Assembly: GCA_977020255.1 (NCBI GenBank)
Contig: CDROCS010003840.1
Coordinates: forward strand, 62,001 to 126,000
Direction of reading: 5' to 3'
DNA from: Obrimoposthia wandeli
Lineage: Eukaryota
Length of the DNA: 64,000 nucleotides
Of this stretch, positions 5,962 through 62,751 are shown piece after piece (position 1 is the stretch's first letter; the number at the start of each line of letters is the position of its first letter). Made by a program: the position numbers and the translations under genes. The notes under the pieces are model-generated. The model saw only the letters and a program-made list of their open reading frames with translations. It did no database searches and had not been told where the DNA came from.

Positions 5962-7833
5962 ATGATGGAACGATTGCGCGAAGGCGTTAACAGTATTTGG
6001 GTTAAGGTTATTCTTGGCTTAATTATTTTTTCTTTTGTTTTTGCCGGGGTTGGTAGTTATCTAGCCGGTGGTAGCCAACCAGTTGCAGCAAAAATTAATG
6101 GCTCTGAAATTAGCCAAAACGAATTTGAACAGGCTTACCAAAATGAGCGTAACCGAATGCAGTCACAGCTTGGTGATTACTTCTCGACGCTATTAGGTGA
6201 TCCTGAATATGTTAAACAGTTCCGTCAAAGCGTTCTTGATCGCATGATCAATGACGTATTGCTAGAACAACGTGCTACAGACCTTGGTCTTCGCATTAGT
6301 GATGAGCATATCCGTAAAACGATTACCTCAATGCCTGAATTCCAGCGTGATGGGCAGTTTGATAATGAGTCGTACACCATGTTATTGCGCCGTTCAGGTT
6401 TCACACCTGATCAGTTTGCGGAATATATGCGTACAGACATGCTGCGTACGCAATTCTTAACCGCTATTCAAGGTAGTGATTTCGCGCTAGATAGCGAGTT
6501 AACAGCACTTCGTCAATTAGAAGCTCAACAACGTGTTGTTCGTAGCCTAACATTAGATCTTGCTGGCTTTACTAAAAATGCAACCGTGACAGATGAAGAA
6601 GCAAAAGCATTTTACGAGCAAAATCCTCAAATGTTTACGCGTCCTGATCAAGTGAAAGTTGCGTATATCGAACTTTCAGGTGAAGGTTTAAAAGATACAC
6701 TGGATGTGTCTGATGAAGATGCAAAAGCGTATTATGAAGAACATAATGATAAGTACAGCTCTATTGAGCAACGTCAAGTTAGCCACATTCTAGTACAAGG
6801 TGACAATGCGGATGCGAAAGCAAAAGCTGAGGCGCTTAAAGCTGAACTAGATGCGGGTGCTGATTTCTCTGAGCTGGCGTTGTCATCATCTGATGATACA
6901 TACAGTGCTAAAGATGGCGGTAAGCTAGATTGGTTTGAACGTGGTGTGATGGATCCTGCATTTGAAGATGCAGCATTTGATCTTGCTAATAACGGTGATA
7001 TTTCTGGTGTTGTTAAGTCGTCTTTCGGTTACCACATCATCAAATTAGACGCAGTTAAAGCAAGCCAAGTTAAACCATTTGCAGATGTTAGCGCAGAAAT
7101 CATGGTAGAGCTTCGTGAACAGCAAGCTGCTGAACACTTCTACGATATGCAGACAAAGTTAGCGGAAACAGCATTCGAGATGCCTGACTCGCTAGACGAC
7201 GCTGCTGCTGTCGTGAATGCAACGGTTCATACAACAGATTTTATCTCACAAACAGATGCACAAGGTGTATTGGCTAACCCTGCGGTTATGCAAGCATTGT
7301 TCAGTGCTGAAGTACGTGAAGATGGTTTAAACTCTGATGTTATTGAGATTGCACCAGAGCACGTAGTTGTTGTACGTGTTGATGATTCTCGTGACGAAAT
7401 GGTATTACCGTTTGATGAAGTTTCTGCAAAAGTGAAAGCACAACTTGCAATCCAGAAAGGCGAGCAGAATGCACAAGCTAAAGCGGACGATCTGATTGCA
7501 GCACTTCGTGCAGGAAATATAGATGCGCTTGACGCTGAAGGTTTAAGCTTCGGTGAAGAGCAAACTATCAGCCGTTCAGGTCCTGATCGTATGGTTTCTC
7601 AAGTGGCGTTTAGTCTAACAAAACCAACTGATGATCAATCGGTATATGGTATGACGCGTGATGCTACTGGTAACGTTCAAATTATCGCACTTGATAAGGT
7701 GATTGATGTTGATGTTGCTAAAGAGGCAATCAGCAGTGATTTTGCTAAACAAGTTGAGCAAATGAACGCGCAGCAAGATGTGGCAGCAACGCTTCAAGCG
7801 CTTCGCGATACTGCAGAAGTAAGTTATCCATAA
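5962..7833 (+). CDS. ppiD: Periplasmic folding chaperone / peptidyl-prolyl isomerase PpiD
   Basis: N-terminal TM (KVILGLIIFSFVFAG), SurA-like domain, parvulin domain (SHIL...GGKLDWF...FGYHII), 623 aa. Confidence 0.96.
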   Translation: MMERLREGVNSIWVKVILGLIIFSFVFAGVGSYLAGGSQPVAAKINGSEISQNEFEQAYQNERNRMQSQLGDYFSTLLGDPEYVKQFRQSVLDRMINDVLLEQRATDLGLRISDEHIRKTITSMPEFQRDGQFDNESYTMLLRRSGFTPDQFAEYMRTDMLRTQFLTAIQGSDFALDSELTALRQLEAQQRVVRSLTLDLAGFTKNATVTDEEAKAFYEQNPQMFTRPDQVKVAYIELSGEGLKDTLDVSDEDAKAYYEEHNDKYSSIEQRQVSHILVQGDNADAKAKAEALKAELDAGADFSELALSSSDDTYSAKDGGKLDWFERGVMDPAFEDAAFDLANNGDISGVVKSSFGYHIIKLDAVKASQVKPFADVSAEIMVELREQQAAEHFYDMQTKLAETAFEMPDSLDDAAAVVNATVHTTDFISQTDAQGVLANPAVMQALFSAEVREDGLNSDVIEIAPEHVVVVRVDDSRDEMVLPFDEVSAKVKAQLAIQKGEQNAQAKADDLIAALRAGNIDALDAEGLSFGEEQTISRSGPDRMVSQVAFSLTKPTDDQSVYGMTRDATGNVQIIALDKVIDVDVAKEAISSDFAKQVEQMNAQQDVAATLQALRDTAEVSYP

Positions 7834-7875
7834 TTGGATATATCTGCAAATTAACTGAAATTGATGTTTCTGTTA

Positions 7876-7906
7876 ACGGGTCGCCATTGTGCGACCCGTC
7901 GTTTTT
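7876..7906 (+). terminator. Intrinsic terminator after ppiD
   Basis: ACGGGTCGC-CATTGT-GCGACCCGT followed by CGTTTTT. Confidence 0.8.
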
Positions 7907-8185
7907 ATACTGTAAAAACGCTTTTAAACCTTTCTCTTCGTTCCTGTCCCGCTATTCTCATCTCAGTTATAACCACTGTGGTTTATCACTAATACCATTC
8001 TGGATAAGTAAATGGTCAGATAATTGCGTAGATAAAATTGATAATAACAAGGCAGAAATTGAAGTAACTAGTGGTTCTAATTATAAAATTTCTAACGCAG
8101 TTATAAGCAATTTTAACCAGCAAGGATGATCAGATACTTGTCTAGATTGGTATAAGTACTTAATTGAATATTCAAAGGAATAGAA

Positions 8186-8470
8186 ATGAAGACGATTATT
8201 AAAATGGCATTATTTTCAATATTTTTACTCTTAGCGCCGTTAAGTCAGGCAGCTAATGAATACGAAGGAATTGAAATAAAAATTAACATCAATAATGCAA
8301 ACGCAGAAGAATTAGATAAGTTGTTGATTGGTATTGGTCCAGAGAAAGCCGAAAGTATCATTATCTATCGTAAAGAAAAGGGTAATTTTCAGACTGCAGA
8401 TGATTTGATTAATGTGAAAGGTATTGGCCTTGCGACTGTTGATAAAAACAGAGAAAGAATAGAATTATAA
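8186..8470 (+). CDS. comEA: ComEA-family helix-hairpin-helix DNA-binding protein (competence DNA receptor / YbaV-like)
   Basis: Signal peptide followed by ININNANAEEL...GIGPEKAESII...VKGIG (two HhH motifs); follows ppiD. Confidence 0.9.
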   Translation: MKTIIKMALFSIFLLLAPLSQAANEYEGIEIKININNANAEELDKLLIGIGPEKAESIIIYRKEKGNFQTADDLINVKGIGLATVDKNRERIEL

Positions 8471-8567
8471 ATGACTGGTAGATAACACGAGAAGGAGAGA
8501 GGCGTAGTACTCCTTCATCAGTGACGGTTCTACCGCTATGGTTCCCCCTGATAGTTTGTAAGCTGGC

Positions 8568-8762
8568 TTAGCTCATTGATGAACGCTTATTTTGATAAGT
8601 AAATGCAGCACGAGCAGTAGATAAAAACATGTCGTAGCCATAGCACTGGTAGTCACTCATTAGTGCCTGTGCATTTTCTAATGAAAATTTATACTTACCT
8701 CGCTTACCCACTCGAACAATGCCCTCAGGTAGTTTTATATTCACACGATATAGAGGTGTCAT
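8568..8762 (-). CDS. Small hypothetical protein (64 aa)
   Basis: ATG preceded by AAGGT about 7 nt upstream; overlaps no other gene; same strand and 87 bp downstream of the yeaR-like gene. Confidence 0.55.
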   Translation of the reverse strand: MTPLYRVNIKLPEGIVRVGKRGKYKFSLENAQALMSDYQCYGYDMFLSTARAAFTYQNKRSSMS

Positions 8763-9325: not shown

Positions 9326-9898
9326 TCAATTAATTACTTTTTTCTTCAGTAGCTTGTTGGGGTAAAAAAAACTGAGAAATCCTGACAATGAACCTATTAA
9401 CGCGCCAATTAAGTGTGCTTCGGTTGCCACGCGAGCACCAATTAGGGCTTCTGAACTGGCTGAACCGCCGTAGATTTGCTCCCAAGTGATCTTGATAATT
9501 AATCCAACAAATAACAGCCAGCCACCTTTCGTTTTTGTGCGTATATCACTAATCGCTCCCCAAGCGAATATGCCATGCAGTACCCCTGACAATCCAGCGT
9601 ACCATTGCATATTAGTGGCGAATATTCCGCCGCCTATGCCGATAGAAAGCACGATGATTAAAGCGGTGTAACGTTTGGCATTAAAATGGGCACGAAAAAT
9701 AAAACTAATAATCAGGAGTGCTAATGCGTTCATTAACAAATGTGCCCAATTGGTATGCGTTAGATTTCCTGTTAATATCCGCCATATTTCACCCTGAAGA
9801 ATCGCATTACGATCCCAAGCAAGCCAAGGCTGAAGCGTGGGTATTTGCGCAACAAGGCAGATAGTAATGACGAAAAATAAATACGTACGAATAGACAA
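9326..9898 (-). CDS. rrtA: Rhombosortase (rhomboid protease for GlyGly-CTERM proteins)
   Basis: WRILTGNLTHTNWAHLLMN, catalytic GLSGVLHG and EAHLIG; TTG start at 9898 with GAGG SD. Confidence 0.88.
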   Translation of the reverse strand: MSIRTYLFFVITICLVAQIPTLQPWLAWDRNAILQGEIWRILTGNLTHTNWAHLLMNALALLIISFIFRAHFNAKRYTALIIVLSIGIGGGIFATNMQWYAGLSGVLHGIFAWGAISDIRTKTKGGWLLFVGLIIKITWEQIYGGSASSEALIGARVATEAHLIGALIGSLSGFLSFFYPNKLLKKKVIN

Positions 9899-9907
9899 GG
9901 CAACCTC

Positions 9908-10561
9908 ATGAGTCGATATTGTGGACAGTGTAAAAAGGCTAAAAAAGCCTGTATTTGTCACTGGGTTCAGGTCATTGATGCTAAAACTGAATTATGGATA
10001 TTACAACATCCATCTGAAATTAATCGAGCGATTGGCACAGCGCGAATACTTACTTTGTCATTGCCGAACGCACATCTATGGGTGGGTGAAGATTTTTCTG
10101 AACACGATGAAATAAATGCCTTACTCAGCGATAAAAATAGAGAAGTGTGGATAGTCTATCCTGGGGATGGCTCAATCCCTATCTCTCAACTCGTTACGTC
10201 TTCGTTACCGATGCACTCTGATACAGTGGAAGAGGGTTCGGCGAATAAGATCCGAACATTCATCTTATTAGATGGGACGTGGAAAAAAGCGTTTAAGATG
10301 TGGCAGCTATCAAGTAATTTACAGCAATTGCCCACCGTTAATCTTGATAATGCCGACAATGGTAATTATCGAATTCGTAAATCATCGAAAGATCAGGGAG
10401 TTTCAACAGTAGAGGCGGGTTATTTAGCGTTAATTGTACTTGAAGAACACCCTGAAAAGTTTCAACCATTATTAGATACCTTCAATAAGATGATTGATTT
10501 TCAGATTCAGCAGATGCCTGAAGGGGTTTATCAGAAAAATTATGGCGGCTCTAGCAACTAG
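9908..10561 (+). CDS. DTW-domain protein (tRNA-uridine aminocarboxypropyltransferase family)
   Basis: CxxC...CxC N-terminus, ILQHPSE, LLDGTWKKA (DTW motif), STVEA. Confidence 0.9.
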   Translation: MSRYCGQCKKAKKACICHWVQVIDAKTELWILQHPSEINRAIGTARILTLSLPNAHLWVGEDFSEHDEINALLSDKNREVWIVYPGDGSIPISQLVTSSLPMHSDTVEEGSANKIRTFILLDGTWKKAFKMWQLSSNLQQLPTVNLDNADNGNYRIRKSSKDQGVSTVEAGYLALIVLEEHPEKFQPLLDTFNKMIDFQIQQMPEGVYQKNYGGSSN

Positions 10562-10582
10562 CGCGCTGTATTCTGTTCCTCG

Positions 10583-10620
10583 GTTATCTCAAGCTGCTGA
10601 AACAAACATCTTGAGATAAC
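10583..10620. terminator. Hairpin between convergent DTW and dGTPase genes
   Basis: GTTATCTCAAG-16 nt-CTTGAGATAAC, perfect 11-bp stem; no clear U tract. Confidence 0.55.
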
Positions 10621-53602: not shown

Positions 53603-55552
53603 ATGACTCGTCTATATATTGCAGAAAAACCCAGTTTAGGTCGTGCGATTGCCGCGGTATTACCTCGTCCTCATAAAAATAATAATGGTTATATTGAAAT
53701 CGGCAATGGGGACATAGTAACTTGGTGTATCGGGCATTTGCTGGAACAGGTTGAACCCGATGCCTATGACGAGAAATACAAAAAATGGAACATGGCAGAT
53801 CTTCCTATTATCCCAGAGCAATGGCAGCTTTCTCCGCGTAAATCGGCTAAACAGCAATTGGCTGTGGTGCGTAAACTCGCCAAACAAGCCACTGACATTG
53901 TGCATGCTGGCGACCCTGATAGAGAAGGGCAGTTATTAGTTGATGAAGTGATCGATTACGTTAAAGTTTCTGCTAAAAAGAAAACGGAAATTCAGCGTTT
54001 ATTGATTTCAGATTTAAACCCAGCAGCGGTAAAACGTGCCTTATCAAGCATGCGTAGCAATCGTGAATTCATCCCTTTATCTGTTTCTGCTTTAGCGCGA
54101 TCACGTGCAGATTGGCTATACGGTATGAACATGACTCGAGCGTACACTTTGCTTGGTCAGAAAGGCGGTTATCGAGGTGTGTTGTCTGTAGGGCGAGTAC
54201 AAACACCTATTTTAGGGTTAGTGACTCGACGTGATGATGAGATTGCGAATTTTAATCCGAAACCCTTTTACGAAGTATTTGCGCTGATCCCTTATCAAGA
54301 TATGGATATTCGTGCTCGCTGGAAGCCGAGTGAGGCATGCCAACCTTGGCAAGATGAAGAAGGGCGAGTGCTTAATCGTCAGTTGTGTGAGAACGTGCTC
54401 AAGCGCATTAAAGGGCAACCCGCAGAAGTAACAGAATCGGAACGTAAAGAAACACGCCAAGCGCCGCCTTTGCCATATTCTTTATCAGCATTACAAATTG
54501 ATGCCGCCAAGCGATTTGGTATGAGCGCTGTTGATGTACTAGCGAACTGCCAGTCTTTGTATGAAAGGCATAAAGCGATTACTTACCCTCGTTCAGATTC
54601 TCGCTATTTACCCAGCGAGCACTTTAAACAAGCCAACGAAGTATGCCGCGCGGTGGCATCCAATGTGAGCGAGTTGTCATATGCATGCAATGGGGCAAAC
54701 ACGACGTTGAAATCGAAAGCGTGGAATGACAAAAAAGTGGATGCTCACCATGCAATCATACCAACACCAAAACAACTCAGCCCTAATGCATTAAGTGGTA
54801 GCGAGAGTAAAGTTTACCAGTTGATTGCGCGTCAATACGTCATGCAATTTTATCCTGCTGCGATTTATGCTGAAGCGAAGTTAGTGTTTACCATTGCACA
54901 AGGACACTTTATTGCCCGTGGTCGTCAGCTAATGAGTGCCGGATGGCGAGAATTACTAGGGCGAGATCAGGCTGAAGACAAGACGAAAGTCGCTGGAAAT
55001 AGTGACCAAGGGTTAACAGATAAAGTCCCCCCTCTTGATAAGGGGACGGTTTTAACCTGTCGAGAAGGTGAAATCAAAGACAAGATGACCGAGCCGCCGA
55101 AAGCCTTTACTGAGGCGACTCTACTACAAGCGATGACGGGAATTGCCCGCTTTGTTTCGGATAGCTCACTGAAAAAGATACTACGAGATACCGACGGCTT
55201 AGGCACTGAAGCAACTCGTGCGGGTATTTTAGAGTTATTGTTTAAGCGACAGTTACTAATGCGCCAAGCGAAAAATATTCATGCGACGGATGCTGGTCGA
55301 GGGCTTGTTTATGCACTGCCCGATGAAGCGACATATCCCGATATGACGGCTCACTGGGAACACCAGTTGCAAGATATGGCAGATAAAAAATGTGCCTATC
55401 AACCATTTATGGATGCTTTGCAGCAGCAAGTTAGTCAATTGATGGATAAAGTGAAATACAGTGAGGTGCCTGAAAGCCTGCGCCAACTAACATCACCAGA
55501 ACCTAGAAAACCCATGAAAAAAAAGCGTTATACGAAAAGTAAGAAAAGCTAA
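53603..55552 (+). CDS. topB: DNA topoisomerase III
   Basis: LYIAEKPSLG, HAGDPDREGQL, SVGRVQTP, catalytic ITYPRSD, AHHAIIPT, GLGTEATRAGI. Confidence 0.97.
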   Translation: MTRLYIAEKPSLGRAIAAVLPRPHKNNNGYIEIGNGDIVTWCIGHLLEQVEPDAYDEKYKKWNMADLPIIPEQWQLSPRKSAKQQLAVVRKLAKQATDIVHAGDPDREGQLLVDEVIDYVKVSAKKKTEIQRLLISDLNPAAVKRALSSMRSNREFIPLSVSALARSRADWLYGMNMTRAYTLLGQKGGYRGVLSVGRVQTPILGLVTRRDDEIANFNPKPFYEVFALIPYQDMDIRARWKPSEACQPWQDEEGRVLNRQLCENVLKRIKGQPAEVTESERKETRQAPPLPYSLSALQIDAAKRFGMSAVDVLANCQSLYERHKAITYPRSDSRYLPSEHFKQANEVCRAVASNVSELSYACNGANTTLKSKAWNDKKVDAHHAIIPTPKQLSPNALSGSESKVYQLIARQYVMQFYPAAIYAEAKLVFTIAQGHFIARGRQLMSAGWRELLGRDQAEDKTKVAGNSDQGLTDKVPPLDKGTVLTCREGEIKDKMTEPPKAFTEATLLQAMTGIARFVSDSSLKKILRDTDGLGTEATRAGILELLFKRQLLMRQAKNIHATDAGRGLVYALPDEATYPDMTAHWEHQLQDMADKKCAYQPFMDALQQQVSQLMDKVKYSEVPESLRQLTSPEPRKPMKKKRYTKSKKS

Positions 55553-57171
55553 ATGACAAAGTAGCGATTACGACCTTGTGATTTTGCTTCATACAGTGCC
55601 ATATCGGCTTGTTTGAATAATTCTTGATGAGAACTGTGTGACACAGGAGTAACAGTACTAACACCAATACTGATTGTGACGATTGTCGAGTCCCCGTCAG
55701 TATTGGCACATTTCATTCTTGTTAGTTGAAGCTGTTGAATTTCAGCTAATGCTTGTTTGGCTGCGTATTGTGCCGCATGTGTATCTTGCCCTGGTAATAA
55801 GAGCACAAACTCTTCACCACCATAGCGAGCAAATAATGCACCCGCTCTACGTTCTCGTTTTTCTAATGTAGAAGCAATAATCTTTAAACACTCATCGCCA
55901 GCGGCATGCCCGTAATTGTCGTTGTAAGATTTAAAATTATCCACATCCATTATCAATAAAGATAAAGGCAGTTGATGCCGTTCAGCTCGACGCCATTCTT
56001 CGATAATTTTCTTATCAAACACTCTACGGTTAGCAATGTTAGTAAGCGGATCGAGTTTCGATAGGCTTTCTAGCTTTTGATTCACAAGCTCAAGCTCTGC
56101 GGTTCTTTTTGTGACGCGTTGTTCTAATTCTTTATTGAGGTTTCTAAGGTTCTCTTCAGCTTGTCTGCACACGATATTCTGAGAAAGAATAAAACCAAAT
56201 TGTTTGAGTAAATGAGGGTGGTAGTTATACAGTGGGGTACCGGTAATTAGGTTGTCGCAAGCTATCCAACCAACGGGGGTATTTTCATCCCATAATGCAA
56301 TGTAACAACTCCAACCAAAGCCAACTTGTTTAAGATTGTGATACAGCGGAGTATTATTTTCGATAGCAAGGTATTCTTTATTTGAACGGGTGTGTGCTAA
56401 AAACCATAGATTGGGGATATCAGATTCAAAATAATGTTCATCAACCGTTTTACCATGTAGGTCTGTACCATAAGTGCCGCGCATACGGTTATTTTTGTCT
56501 CGAATAAAAATGGCCATGCGATCAATTTGTAATTGTTTTTTGCCTTCTTCAACAGCAGTGTAAAGCATCTCGTTCATTGAGTGTGAACGCCAAAGCTTAA
56601 AAGAAATATCATGCAATGCTTGTAGTTGTTCTAATAAGTTTTTTTGCTCGTGCTGGCTGATTTCTAATTCACGTTCAGCTGAACGACGACCCCAGTGCTC
56701 ATCTTGAATTGACTGAGTAAGAAAGCCTGTATCAATTTCGGAGGCTAATAATGAGGTTAGCGTGGCAAATGCCTCACAATCTAGCAGTGGTTCGCTAAGC
56801 GGTATATCAACCACTAAGCATCCGATAATGCGAGATCGACGCTCTAAAGGTAGCCATAAACGTTGTACATCATGTTGGTGTGTAATATGTGGTTGGTTGT
56901 GCTTTGTGAATTCTATGATGTGATCCAATGGAAAATGATTGCTAGCAGGAATTTCAGAGGGAGGAGATTGATAGCTTATCTCTTGGCTATTCATCTCAAG
57001 CAAGATTTTCCATGTTGATTGAGCGTCGACAATGATTTGGCAATGCAACGCATTAAAGCTTTCACAAAAATTACGGCACGTTAACTCACAAATTGTGCGC
57101 AGGCTATGGGCTTTGCCCCATTGCTCGATAATTCTCTGATAGAAAATACTTAATTGTTGATTACTTGCCAC
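55549..57171 (-). CDS. Sensor (GAF-like)-GGDEF diguanylate cyclase
   Basis: DPLTNIANRR, DVDNFKSYNDNYGHAAGD, ARYGGEEF, TISIG, ADMALYEAKSQGRN. Confidence 0.92.
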   Translation of the reverse strand: MASNQQLSIFYQRIIEQWGKAHSLRTICELTCRNFCESFNALHCQIIVDAQSTWKILLEMNSQEISYQSPPSEIPASNHFPLDHIIEFTKHNQPHITHQHDVQRLWLPLERRSRIIGCLVVDIPLSEPLLDCEAFATLTSLLASEIDTGFLTQSIQDEHWGRRSAERELEISQHEQKNLLEQLQALHDISFKLWRSHSMNEMLYTAVEEGKKQLQIDRMAIFIRDKNNRMRGTYGTDLHGKTVDEHYFESDIPNLWFLAHTRSNKEYLAIENNTPLYHNLKQVGFGWSCYIALWDENTPVGWIACDNLITGTPLYNYHPHLLKQFGFILSQNIVCRQAEENLRNLNKELEQRVTKRTAELELVNQKLESLSKLDPLTNIANRRVFDKKIIEEWRRAERHQLPLSLLIMDVDNFKSYNDNYGHAAGDECLKIIASTLEKRERRAGALFARYGGEEFVLLLPGQDTHAAQYAAKQALAEIQQLQLTRMKCANTDGDSTIVTISIGVSTVTPVSHSSHQELFKQADMALYEAKSQGRNRYFVI

Positions 57172-57437
57172 TAGCGCAGTTCCAAATGATATGTATTGAT
57201 TAATATGAGCTTATTTTTAACCAAATTACGCTAAAAGTATGCGTATACCCCACACTATGTTGTGATTATTCGTATAGATTTATAAAATTGCGATGTATGC
57301 CTCATCGGCACATGGTGAATGTTCTCGAGAACGATAAATCATCATAAGAATTTTTGCAGGGTGTTGAAAATGAGACAAATGTAAATGCCTTGATTGACTA
57401 GCTTTAAAGACTAAAACAATGAATAGTGAGAGCAGTT

Positions 57438-57713
57438 ATGTTCGTAATTATGCGTATAAGTATTGCTGCTGGCATGTTGATTATTGTGAGTGGATGCTCT
57501 GCTACGCGGCATGATCAATTATCGAATTTAGGCTTCACTAGACACTATCTCGATGGCTATCAAGATGGATGTAATAGCCGTAAAGAAGATTTGAATACCT
57601 ATTTAGAGGGTTTTCGTCGAGATCCCGAGCGAATGAAGGTTGAAGGTAAATATGCGAGTGGTTGGAATGATGGTTACGAACAGTGTTATGCCGATAATGC
57701 TGAATATCATTAA
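57438..57713 (+). CDS. Small hypothetical lipoprotein
   Basis: Lipobox VSGC; paired motifs YLDGYQDGC / YASGWNDGYEQC. Confidence 0.75.
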   Translation: MFVIMRISIAAGMLIIVSGCSATRHDQLSNLGFTRHYLDGYQDGCNSRKEDLNTYLEGFRRDPERMKVEGKYASGWNDGYEQCYADNAEYH

Positions 57714-61134: not shown

Positions 61135-61188
61135 AAACCACCTAACGTGCTTTTGTGAAATACAAAGGTAAACGAAGGTGGTTTTTTT
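61135..61188 (+). terminator. Extended hairpin terminator after yejK
   Basis: AAACCACCT...AGGTGGTTTTTTT enclosing TTTGT-GAAAT-ACAAA. Confidence 0.75.
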
Positions 61189-61326
61189 GTGCCTGCTTTT
61201 CATATTTATGACTTGTTGGTATTCACTCATATATTGTCTACTCTTTTAATAATACAAAACAAATTTCATATTAAGGTATTGAGAGTCGTTGTCCTTACTT
61301 TAAATTGTAACTTTTCAGGTGGTTAA

Positions 61327-62652
61327 ATGCGTAAAGTGCAGTCGCTCGATAGTAGGCGTACTCGTAAAATACTTAATGTGATGATTTTTATCATTGCAGC
61401 TTCTGTGGTGGGGGTGAGCTACTTTTCTTATCAATCTTCCCAAGCATTGAATGTTATTGCTCAAATTTCGAGTCTAGAAAGTGAGGCAGAACAACTTCAG
61501 AATGGCTTGCTAATGTATGTATCAGAGTTAGTGTTGTTCAATATGGTACTGATGGGCATAACATCAGTACTGGCTATTACTTCAATGTTTACTGCTGTTA
61601 GGCTACTGATTTCAGTGGAAGCGATAGAGCGTTCTGAAGCAGTAGATCGATCTGAAACTGAAGAGCGATCCGATACAGTCGAAGCACAATACGTAGAAGA
61701 GACGATTTCTGTAGCAACGATTGTAACTAAACCTGACGAAAAACCATTAGCTGCAACTCAACGTTCACCTCAAGGTACGCGTTATCATGATTCATCAGAA
61801 GATTCGATCATAGACATCAATTATATTTTAGAGAGCATGAATGGTGACAAAGAATCGGTTGTGATGTTGTTAGAGATATTTCGAGAAGAGCATGCAGCCG
61901 ACGGGTTACAACTGAGAGAATTGATCGAAGATTCAAAAAACGAAGATGCATTATGTTTAGTGCACAATTTAAAAGAGGTGGCTGGTGGTCTTGGTACGTC
62001 AAGATTAAAAGTTGAATCTGAACGACTTGAACAAAATTATCAACAGCAAAAGTCAGTAACGGTTAATGATGCAGAAAAATTGACTGTTCTTATTTATCAA
62101 GTCGTTAATGCGATTAATGAATATTTGATCGTTGAAATAAAAGACTCCAATAATATCCCACTGAATATAGACGCAAAGAAAACCTCATCTATCGTAGACG
62201 CAAGTGATGAAGTGTCGGGGAGTACCAAACAGTCAGTGGTTGATAAAGATAAAGAAAAAAGACCGTCATTTTCTGAATCCACATCTAAGGTTGCTATCGA
62301 TCTTCCACTGATGTTGGAAGCAATGGATGGCGATCTAGATTCTGTACAAATAATCTTGGGTATCTTTATGGATGAACATGCCTCTGATGCAGAAAAATTA
62401 CACCATTTCGTATCGCAGTGTGAGCCAACCAATATTAGCGAACCAGCTATCAGAATCGTACATAGCTTAAAAGGTGTAGCAGGTAGTTTGGGCGCGGCAA
62501 AACTAAAAGCGATAACGGGTGAAATTGAAATGAAGTTTATACAGCATCAAGTTGTGGGTGATGCGGATTATCGCGTTTTATCTCTTGCTCTAGATGAATG
62601 TATTACGCAAGCTATATCTTATATTTCTGAAGAATCTAATGTTCATGCTTAA
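61327..62652 (+). CDS. Membrane-anchored protein with two Hpt (histidine phosphotransfer) domains
   Basis: Two N-terminal hydrophobic segments; Hpt1 (aa ~161-265, VHNLKEVAGGLG, His213) and Hpt2 (aa ~323-435, VHSLKGVAGSLG, His379). Confidence 0.85.
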   Translation: MRKVQSLDSRRTRKILNVMIFIIAASVVGVSYFSYQSSQALNVIAQISSLESEAEQLQNGLLMYVSELVLFNMVLMGITSVLAITSMFTAVRLLISVEAIERSEAVDRSETEERSDTVEAQYVEETISVATIVTKPDEKPLAATQRSPQGTRYHDSSEDSIIDINYILESMNGDKESVVMLLEIFREEHAADGLQLRELIEDSKNEDALCLVHNLKEVAGGLGTSRLKVESERLEQNYQQQKSVTVNDAEKLTVLIYQVVNAINEYLIVEIKDSNNIPLNIDAKKTSSIVDASDEVSGSTKQSVVDKDKEKRPSFSESTSKVAIDLPLMLEAMDGDLDSVQIILGIFMDEHASDAEKLHHFVSQCEPTNISEPAIRIVHSLKGVAGSLGAAKLKAITGEIEMKFIQHQVVGDADYRVLSLALDECITQAISYISEESNVHA

Positions 62653-62737: not shown

Positions 62738-62751
62738 TTGATCTTAATCAA
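62738..62751 (+). promoter_or_regulatory. FNR-type site upstream of the ygbA-like gene
   Basis: TTGAT-CTTA-ATCAA, exact FNR consensus. Confidence 0.75.

Follow-up and report, generated by a model that had tools for sequence, protein, structure and literature searches.

The 64,000-nucleotide window analysed here (positions 62,001 to 126,000, forward strand, of contig CDROCS010003840.1, assembly GCA_977020255.1, filed under Obrimoposthia wandeli) encodes near its end a 441-residue protein with a membrane anchor and two histidine phosphotransfer (Hpt) modules, termed Hpt1 and Hpt2. The protein belongs to a Vibrionaceae family of membrane Hpt proteins that has a fixed address behind yejK, and within which only the architecture and the downstream neighbour vary. 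Ancestral members of the family would have worked with an adjacent hybrid kinase related to CqsR; in the lineage of the window the kinase gene is gone, the periplasmic domain is reduced to a stub and the Hpt module is present twice. On balance, we favour a reading in which Hpt2 acts as a shuttle serving non-adjacent hybrid kinases and Hpt1 as a docking, or pseudo-Hpt, module. Protein identities of the neighbouring genes place the host contig in Photobacterium, in the profundum/frigidiphilum/indicum group (99% for YejK, ~95% for YejM and 99% for an M20 peptidase), where the Hpt protein itself is only 63-74% identical. The source assembly comprises 1.35 Gb in 6912 contigs, many of them bacterial, and represents a mixture of organisms.

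Domain architecture and predicted structure

The gene and the segments of its product, as delimited by hydropathy, Pfam and AlphaFold2, are as follows.

61327-62652, forward strand: gene of the membrane-anchored tandem-Hpt protein, an intact open reading frame (ORF) of 441 residues
61369-61431, forward strand: transmembrane helix 1 (TM1), residues ~15-35, from hydropathy, preceded by basic residues 1-14 with six Lys/Arg
61432-61521, forward strand: periplasmic stub, residues ~36-65, about 30 residues, kept within the clade (QISSLESEAEQLQ)
61522-61614, forward strand: transmembrane helix 2 (TM2), residues ~66-96, from hydropathy and AlphaFold2
61615-61806, forward strand: linker 1, residues 97-160, acidic, disordered and of variable length
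61807-62151, forward strand: Hpt1, residues 161-275, from Pfam and AlphaFold2, with His213 at 61963-61965 and Glu217 at 61975-61977
62152-62292, forward strand: linker 2, residues 276-322, disordered
62293-62649, forward strand: Hpt2, residues 323-441, from Pfam and AlphaFold2, with His379 at 62461-62463

The only Pfam family matched by the 441-residue protein is Hpt (PF01627), in two stretches (61.2 bits against a cut-off of 24.6), and no HisKA, HATPase_c or Response_reg domain was detected at E ≤ 1. The same picture emerged from 30 aligned relatives, all of which matched Pfam Hpt and none of which contained a kinase or receiver remnant at E ≤ 0.01, while NCBIfam returned only sub-threshold, LuxU-like matches to the Hpt domains. 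Hpt1 and Hpt2 share 35% identity (E 9e-20). The original prediction of two transmembrane helices, a low-complexity linker and two homologous Hpt domains, with no HisKA, HATPase or REC domain, is thus confirmed. The N-terminus carries a charge of +6 and the 30-residue loop between the transmembrane helices is acidic; both termini of the protein are therefore assigned to the cytoplasm.

The AlphaFold2 model, computed with a 30-sequence alignment, comprises a helical hairpin (residues 9-51 and 57-111) followed by two four-helix bundles extending from residues 161 to 275 and 323 to 440, both with a predicted local distance difference test (pLDDT) score above 92. The segments connecting these elements, residues 111-157 and 276-319, are disordered (pLDDT < 50), and linker 1 displays insertions and deletions among orthologues. 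The top structural matches of the bundles in the PDB are all Hpt domains; they include the Hpt of a Shewanella hybrid kinase (PDB code 3myf; TM-score of 0.83), which is the best match, HptB (PDB code 7c1i; TM-score of 0.81), ShpA and BarA. In the predicted structure each bundle presents the exposed His on its second helix, as is distinctive of the Hpt fold. With this architecture, we lean towards the view that the protein would be an inner-membrane-tethered histidine phosphotransfer protein.

Active sites of Hpt1 and Hpt2

The phospho-acceptor His is kept in both modules, as had been predicted, and lies within HNLKE in Hpt1 (61963-61977) and HSLKG in Hpt2 (62461-62475). Hpt2 displays the canonical H-x-x-K-G motif, whereas Hpt1 departs from it by presenting Glu217 at position H+4. 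About 150 aligned Hpt domains of the yejK-linked family were compared at these positions. In the terminal or single Hpt, the His is present in every sequence and H+4 is Gly, except for Ser in two. Hpt1 reads HSLKG, and is thus canonical, in kinase-bearing species, while in the clade of the window 11 of the 13 sequences display HNLKE and the other two HNLKG. Even the Hpt1 His varies: the closest relative (91% identity) has Cys in its place, and an unrelated Logan-derived sequence has Glu both there and at H+4. The catalytic positions of Hpt1 are thus relaxed in the clade of the window. In yeast Ypd1, where the corresponding residue is Gly-68, almost no phospho-acceptance remains when the H+4 residue is large or charged, while receiver binding drops only modestly (PMC6341664). 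By analogy, Hpt1 is probably a poor phosphotransfer site that may still bind receivers, and Hpt2, through His379, is the predicted active site.

A Vibrionaceae family located after yejK

A word-based protein search retrieved 48 homologues, all from Photobacterium or Vibrio and annotated as "Hpt domain-containing protein" or hypothetical. The loci examined comprised ~40 named Photobacterium and Vibrio genomes, located through the Hpt2 motif, and 10 further Vibrionaceae, located by coordinates; in every one of them the Hpt gene lies directly after yejM-yejL-yejK and on the same strand as yejK. A genome search of 251 evenly sampled Vibrionaceae gave matches at E ≤ 1e-8 in 131, nearly all within ORFs of 400-720 residues, and some genomes below this threshold nevertheless carry the gene. 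The original prediction had regarded the position after yejK as a variable site. This is not the case, since the Hpt gene is fixed there across Photobacterium, Vibrio and other Vibrionaceae, and it is the gene downstream that changes.

Outside Photobacterium, family members display a transmembrane helix, ~195-210 residues, a second transmembrane helix, a disordered linker and a single Hpt. Sequence comparison therewith points to an ancestral form with a ~200-residue helical periplasmic domain between two transmembrane helices and one Hpt. Structure prediction for the periplasmic part of a long Photobacterium form yielded an all-helical domain, and the best meaningful matches in structural searches, themselves weak, were the helical bimodular (HBM) sensor of McpS and the TorS sensor (TM-scores of 0.4-0.5, E ~5e-3 to 6e-2). 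A distant origin from a TorS-like unorthodox kinase is speculative. The nearest Hpt domains outside the family are found in a ~940-residue hybrid kinase, a protein that scores under every NCBIfam cut-off. Bacterial proteins combining transmembrane helices with an Hpt are numerous in databases (PMC12785465), and therefore the membrane anchor alone is not new; literature searches on membrane-bound or tandem Hpt proteins of Vibrio and Photobacterium and on the neighbours of cqsR, in turn, retrieved no account of the yejK-linked family, of its pairing with a CqsR-like kinase or of a tandem-Hpt protein that is anchored in the membrane and lacks a kinase.

In many Vibrio species the gene following the Hpt gene encodes, in place of the kinase described below, a conserved protein of 394-397 residues (9420-10604 in the V. 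vulnificus locus, ~7395-8588 in further Vibrio loci) that contains a lipoprotein signal (LSGC) and a C-terminal transmembrane helix and has no Pfam match. This lipoprotein may be a periplasmic partner, contacting the periplasmic domain of the Hpt protein. Its interpretation as a kinase remnant was rejected, as BLASTP revealed no similarity to the kinase.

Pairing with an adjacent CqsR-like hybrid kinase

A hybrid kinase gene directly follows the Hpt gene in 14 examined loci, namely those of P. sanguinicancri, P. jeanii, P. kagoshimensis, Bacterium HQB-150 and ten other Vibrionaceae. The kinase, of ~830-860 residues, comprises a Cache/PDC sensor, HisKA, HATPase_c and REC domains and lacks an Hpt. 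Its start codon often overlaps the stop codon of the Hpt gene by 4 nucleotides (ATGA), which suggests an operon with translational coupling. Comparison of the coordinates obtained in the genome searches placed the two genes side by side in 15 sampled genomes, three more cases were verified directly, and ~ten further genomes carry the kinase. Between genera, the kinases encoded at this position are homologous from end to end (30-46% identity).

The closest solved structure, by far, to the periplasmic domain of the kinase is that of CqsR (PDB code 9NIA family; E 1e-19 to 1e-20), these entries representing the ethanolamine-binding domain of the V. cholerae protein (PMC12410723). V. cholerae CqsR is a hybrid kinase that signals through the soluble LuxU (PMC4398556). 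Gene order, overlap and domain content together tip the balance, modestly, towards the ancestral members of the family having served as dedicated Hpt partners for a CqsR-like hybrid kinase encoded next to them and co-translated with them. In species other than V. cholerae, CqsR-like kinases may rely on a membrane Hpt of their own, instead of or besides LuxU.

Loss of the kinase, Hpt duplication and periplasmic deletion

In loci of the ancestral type the kinase gene sits between the Hpt gene and ygbA. No kinase or receiver gene was found in the scanned part of the window, nor within 8 kb on either side in the syntenic P. profundum locus, in agreement with the earlier expectation that no cognate kinase or regulator lies nearby, and the adjacent kinase is absent across the profundum/frigidiphilum/indicum clade. 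Relocation of the kinase to another site was considered and rejected. When the whole kinase was searched against the P. frigidiphilum, P. profundum and P. indicum genomes, only kinase-core paralogues of at most 36-39% identity emerged, all without the sensor region and none an orthologue, and a search with the sensor half identified no orthologue in the assembly of the window, which gave only generic Cache matches (22-39%).

The order of events was assessed on a maximum-likelihood tree of YejM and YejK, midpoint-rooted and with the basal Photobacterium split unresolved. HQB-150, which has the kinase and one Hpt, is the sister of Photobacterium, and all Photobacterium included present two Hpt modules. 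The jeanii/sanguinicancri/kagoshimensis clade retains both the kinase and the long periplasmic domain, whereas the other two clades are without the kinase. Kinase-bearing lineages thus occur both inside and outside Photobacterium, and since the homology of the kinases found at this position extends from end to end, a kinase present once in the ancestor and later lost explains the pattern far more parsimoniously than repeated insertion would. Given the midpoint rooting and the unresolved basal split, the number of kinase losses is one or two. On this tree the Hpt duplication in Photobacterium would have come before the loss of the kinase and of ~170 periplasmic residues in the clade of the window.

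The window protein retains the pair of transmembrane helices and lacks the ~200-residue periplasmic domain of the family. Residues 15-58 align with residues 20-63 of the P. obscurum protein, which is of the long form, covering TM1 and the first periplasmic helix, and residues 59-75 align with P. obscurum residues ~236-252, just before its TM2; an internal deletion of ~170 residues is therefore deduced. Shortening of this domain occurred several times in kinase-less lineages, leaving ~120 residues, a bare hairpin or the 30 residues seen here, and never in kinase-bearing ones. What eroded is the two-gene module, which lost the kinase gene and the periplasmic domain, rather than the Hpt protein itself. 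The original prediction had also considered an eroded hybrid kinase with a duplicated Hpt. The duplication stands, but an eroded hybrid kinase is rejected for the Hpt protein, as Pfam revealed no trace of kinase or receiver in it or in the 30 aligned relatives and the relatives that have a kinase encode it separately, in the adjacent gene.

Selection and expression

Ratios of nonsynonymous to synonymous divergence (dN/dS) were calculated by the Nei-Gojobori method between the window and three named relatives, with dS reaching about 1. They are lowest in the two bundles (0.10-0.33 in Hpt1 and 0.13-0.23 in Hpt2), intermediate in the N-terminus and transmembrane part (0.26-0.53) and highest in the linkers (0.35-1.6; linker 1, 0.35-1.4; linker 2, 0.44-1.6), with 0.28-0.38 for the whole gene. 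Both Hpt bundles are under purifying selection and the linkers are nearly neutral. The corresponding values for the neighbours are ~0.015 for yejK, 0.05-0.09 for yejM and 0.18-0.34 for ygbA. All 13 close orthologues are full-length with intact ORFs. A pseudogene is rejected by these ORFs together with the dN/dS values, and the pseudogene-like decay of orthologues that would have spoken against the original prediction was not observed.

Synonymous divergence within the Hpt gene is patchy among the window, P. frigidiphilum, P. profundum and P. indicum. In Hpt2, dS is 0.10 between P. frigidiphilum and P. profundum and 0.64-0.69 to P. indicum, while in the N-terminus it is 0.13 between the window and P. 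frigidiphilum and 0.5-0.6 to the others. This pattern suggests recombination between lineages within the gene.

A marine-sediment metatranscriptome contains short contigs that are 95-99% identical inside the Hpt ORF, at a depth similar to that of yejK. They lend weak support to expression of the gene.

Proposed mechanism and alternative readings

We infer the phosphotransfer step, its donors and acceptors and the role of Hpt1 as follows. The two long, flexible, disordered linkers would tether Hpt2, with its His379, to the membrane. There, one or more membrane hybrid kinases without an Hpt would hand phosphoryl groups from their receiver domains to Hpt2, and it would then pass these to a response regulator, or return them. 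Hpt1, whose H+4 residue is a charged Glu and whose His is dispensable, would not transfer efficiently and may constitute a receiver-docking or regulatory module. Potential donors are encoded in P. frigidiphilum, which has at least five Hpt-less hybrid kinases (622, 645, 701, 855 and 1145 residues) and only three small free Hpt proteins besides the membrane Hpt protein.

Several points weigh against this mechanism. Neither a donor kinase nor an acceptor regulator gene adjoins the Hpt gene. V. cholerae CqsR uses the soluble LuxU, so that a dedicated membrane Hpt is not strictly needed by CqsR-type kinases. The effect ascribed to the H+4 residue is extrapolated from yeast Ypd1. The Hpt gene is much less constrained than its housekeeping neighbours, which would also fit a weakening function. 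Finally, the RNA contigs are assembled and derive from a relative, and carry-over of DNA is possible.

The alternative that survives best, itself rather unlikely, is a sink or insulator, in which the tethered Hpt modules would feed no regulator of their own but would compete with LuxU-type carriers for the receivers of quorum-sensing-type kinases and thereby drain or buffer phosphoryl flux, with Hpt1 serving as a non-productive decoy. Such a role would be consistent with the lack of an adjacent regulator or kinase in any kinase-less locus, with an H+4 residue in Hpt1 that is expected to block transfer and not binding, and with selection on both Hpt domains; the ancestral partner is, moreover, CqsR-like, and V. 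cholerae CqsR shares LuxU with three other kinases. A sink would, however, have no need for a second, canonical module, and the active site of Hpt2 is canonical, as expected for productive transfer. Between a productive relay and buffering or competition with LuxU-type carriers, sequence alone does not decide, and the sink or hub idea of the original prediction is possible. A comparably tentative proposal is that, across Vibrionaceae, CqsR-type hybrid kinases that sense quorum or host signals were ancestrally wired to their own RcsD-like sensor-Hpt instead of LuxU, and that the duplicated protein of the deep-sea Photobacterium clade without the kinase is an autonomous membrane hub, a second integrator competing with LuxU. 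In such a hub the pseudo-Hpt would dock receivers and the active Hpt would redistribute phosphate among Hpt-less kinases of the LuxQ, LuxN and CqsS class.

More doubtful is a scaffold or adaptor at the membrane without phosphotransfer, for instance one localising a receiver or other proteins, in which the histidines would be incidental. The long disordered tethers and the conserved transmembrane helices and stub do suggest protein-protein contacts, and at least two lineages dispense with the Hpt1 His, but the His, Lys (H+3) and Gly (H+4) of Hpt2 are strictly kept in ~90 sequences (Ser at H+4 in two), which constitutes a catalytic signature. An evolutionary leftover, functionless since the loss of the kinase and slowly decaying, is improbable: although the kinase partner and the periplasmic domain are gone, the gene evolves much faster than its neighbours, linker lengths vary, and Hpt1 has a non-canonical H+4 and a His replaced in one close relative, the ORF is intact in 13/13 close orthologues and in every kinase-less Photobacterium lineage, dN/dS is as low as 0.10-0.33 in both Hpt domains at dS up to about 1, the Hpt2 His is never replaced and the periplasmic stub is conserved.

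Transcription unit and neighbouring genes

The following features were identified around the Hpt gene.

61135-61188, forward strand: intrinsic terminator of yejK, a hairpin followed by U7, identified by folding against shuffled sequences
61208-61235 and 61279-61306, forward strand: two weak sigma-70-like promoter candidates for the Hpt gene, from consensus match only
61317-61322, forward strand: ribosome-binding site AGGTGG, 4 bases before the ATG of the Hpt gene
62738-62751, forward strand: FNR-type box TTGATcttaATCAA before ygbA, a perfect palindrome TTGAT-N4-ATCAA
62788-63150, forward strand: ygbA (YgbA_NO family), from a profile match

The hairpin of the yejK terminator has a minimum free energy of -21.3 kcal/mol (z -3.65), and none of 200 shuffles folded equally well. 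With such a strong terminator upstream, the Hpt gene therefore constitutes its own transcription unit. Both promoter candidates match 9 of 12 consensus positions, which is no better than expected from shuffles. A further weak sigma-70-like match is located at 62125-62154 (forward strand), in linker 2 and 5' of Hpt2. An internal start giving a soluble product with only Hpt2 is conceivable, if unsupported here; an internal start yielding a soluble Hpt product has reportedly been described for rcsD of Yersinia pestis.

The presence of an FNR-boxed ygbA as neighbour, part of the original prediction, is borne out. The box recurs in 16 of 17 related loci, some of which have it overlapping the 3' end of the hybrid kinase gene. 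It belongs to ygbA, which therefore has an anaerobic-type promoter that does not depend on the Hpt gene. A functional link to the Hpt gene through co-transcription with ygbA was rejected, as ygbA has its own conserved FNR-type box even where the kinase gene lies between.

Upstream of yejM, a 540-residue GAF-GGDEF diguanylate cyclase without a receiver domain is encoded at 55549-57171 (reverse strand), and this gene is kept at the same position in the P. profundum and P. lutimaris loci. A small ORF at 57426-57713 (forward strand) encodes 95 residues with a lipoprotein-like N-terminus and has no Pfam match; gene calls of about the same length occupy the corresponding site in P. profundum, P. sanguinicancri and P. 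lutimaris.

Comparison with known phosphotransfer systems

RcsD/RcsC is the closest functional analogue of the ancestral Hpt-kinase pair, which would have formed a split phosphorelay of the same design. Like the family described here, RcsD (YojN) is an inner-membrane protein in which two transmembrane helices enclose a periplasmic domain; it ends in an Hpt and is inactive as a kinase (PMC7418988, PMC12785465). The ancestral family form pairs with a separately encoded, Hpt-less hybrid kinase as RcsD does with RcsC. The family is nevertheless not assigned to RcsD because it lacks the degenerate kinase-like (ABL) region, the corresponding region of the window protein being disordered. The window protein also differs from RcsD in its two Hpt modules and in lacking both an adjacent kinase and a true periplasmic domain, and no sequence relationship was detectable beyond the Hpt fold. 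The partners of RcsD, namely RcsC, RcsB, IgaA and RcsF, belong to a system that is described as enterobacterial.

LuxU provides the best NCBIfam match (NF041948; 39.8 bits, below the equivalog cut-off of 140), and the CqsR-LuxU pair likewise consists of a kinase with a CqsR-like sensor relying on a separate Hpt. In contrast to the anchored tandem protein, which is encoded at another locus, LuxU is a soluble, single-domain protein of ~115 residues common to several kinases. HptB of Pseudomonas aeruginosa and ShpA of Caulobacter resemble the window protein in fold (TM-scores of 0.78-0.81) and in being stand-alone Hpt proteins that serve non-adjacent hybrid kinases, and differ from it in being soluble and single-domain. 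Plant TM-HPt proteins, predicted from sequence, are also small Hpt proteins with a transmembrane anchor (PMC12785465), but they present a single transmembrane helix and a single Hpt, come from another kingdom and lack genomic pairing with a kinase. The multi-Hpt kinases of the ChpA/CheA type display tandem Hpt/Xpt modules on flexible linkers, some with non-canonical phospho-sites; there the modules are fused to a CheA core, whereas the window protein has a membrane anchor and no kinase domain. Other bacterial contigs of the same assembly contain multi-Hpt ORFs of 2171 and 1156 residues, each with several Hpt matches, which are probably ChpA-type chemosensory kinases.

Biological significance

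Stand-alone Hpt proteins decide whether the signals of several hybrid kinases merge or stay apart. Those that have been studied are, to our knowledge, almost all soluble (LuxU, HptB, Ypd1), RcsD being the one well-known membrane exception. Many Vibrionaceae possess a membrane Hpt of the RcsD-like kind, hitherto uncharacterised, as the presumed operon partner of a kinase akin to CqsR, the quorum-sensing receptor by which V. cholerae senses ethanolamine. This pairing offers a testable hypothesis for the routing of CqsR-type signals outside V. cholerae. The gene in the window represents a natural experiment, having lost its kinase and its sensor domain and gained a second Hpt, and it raises the question of what an orphaned phosphotransfer protein is kept for.

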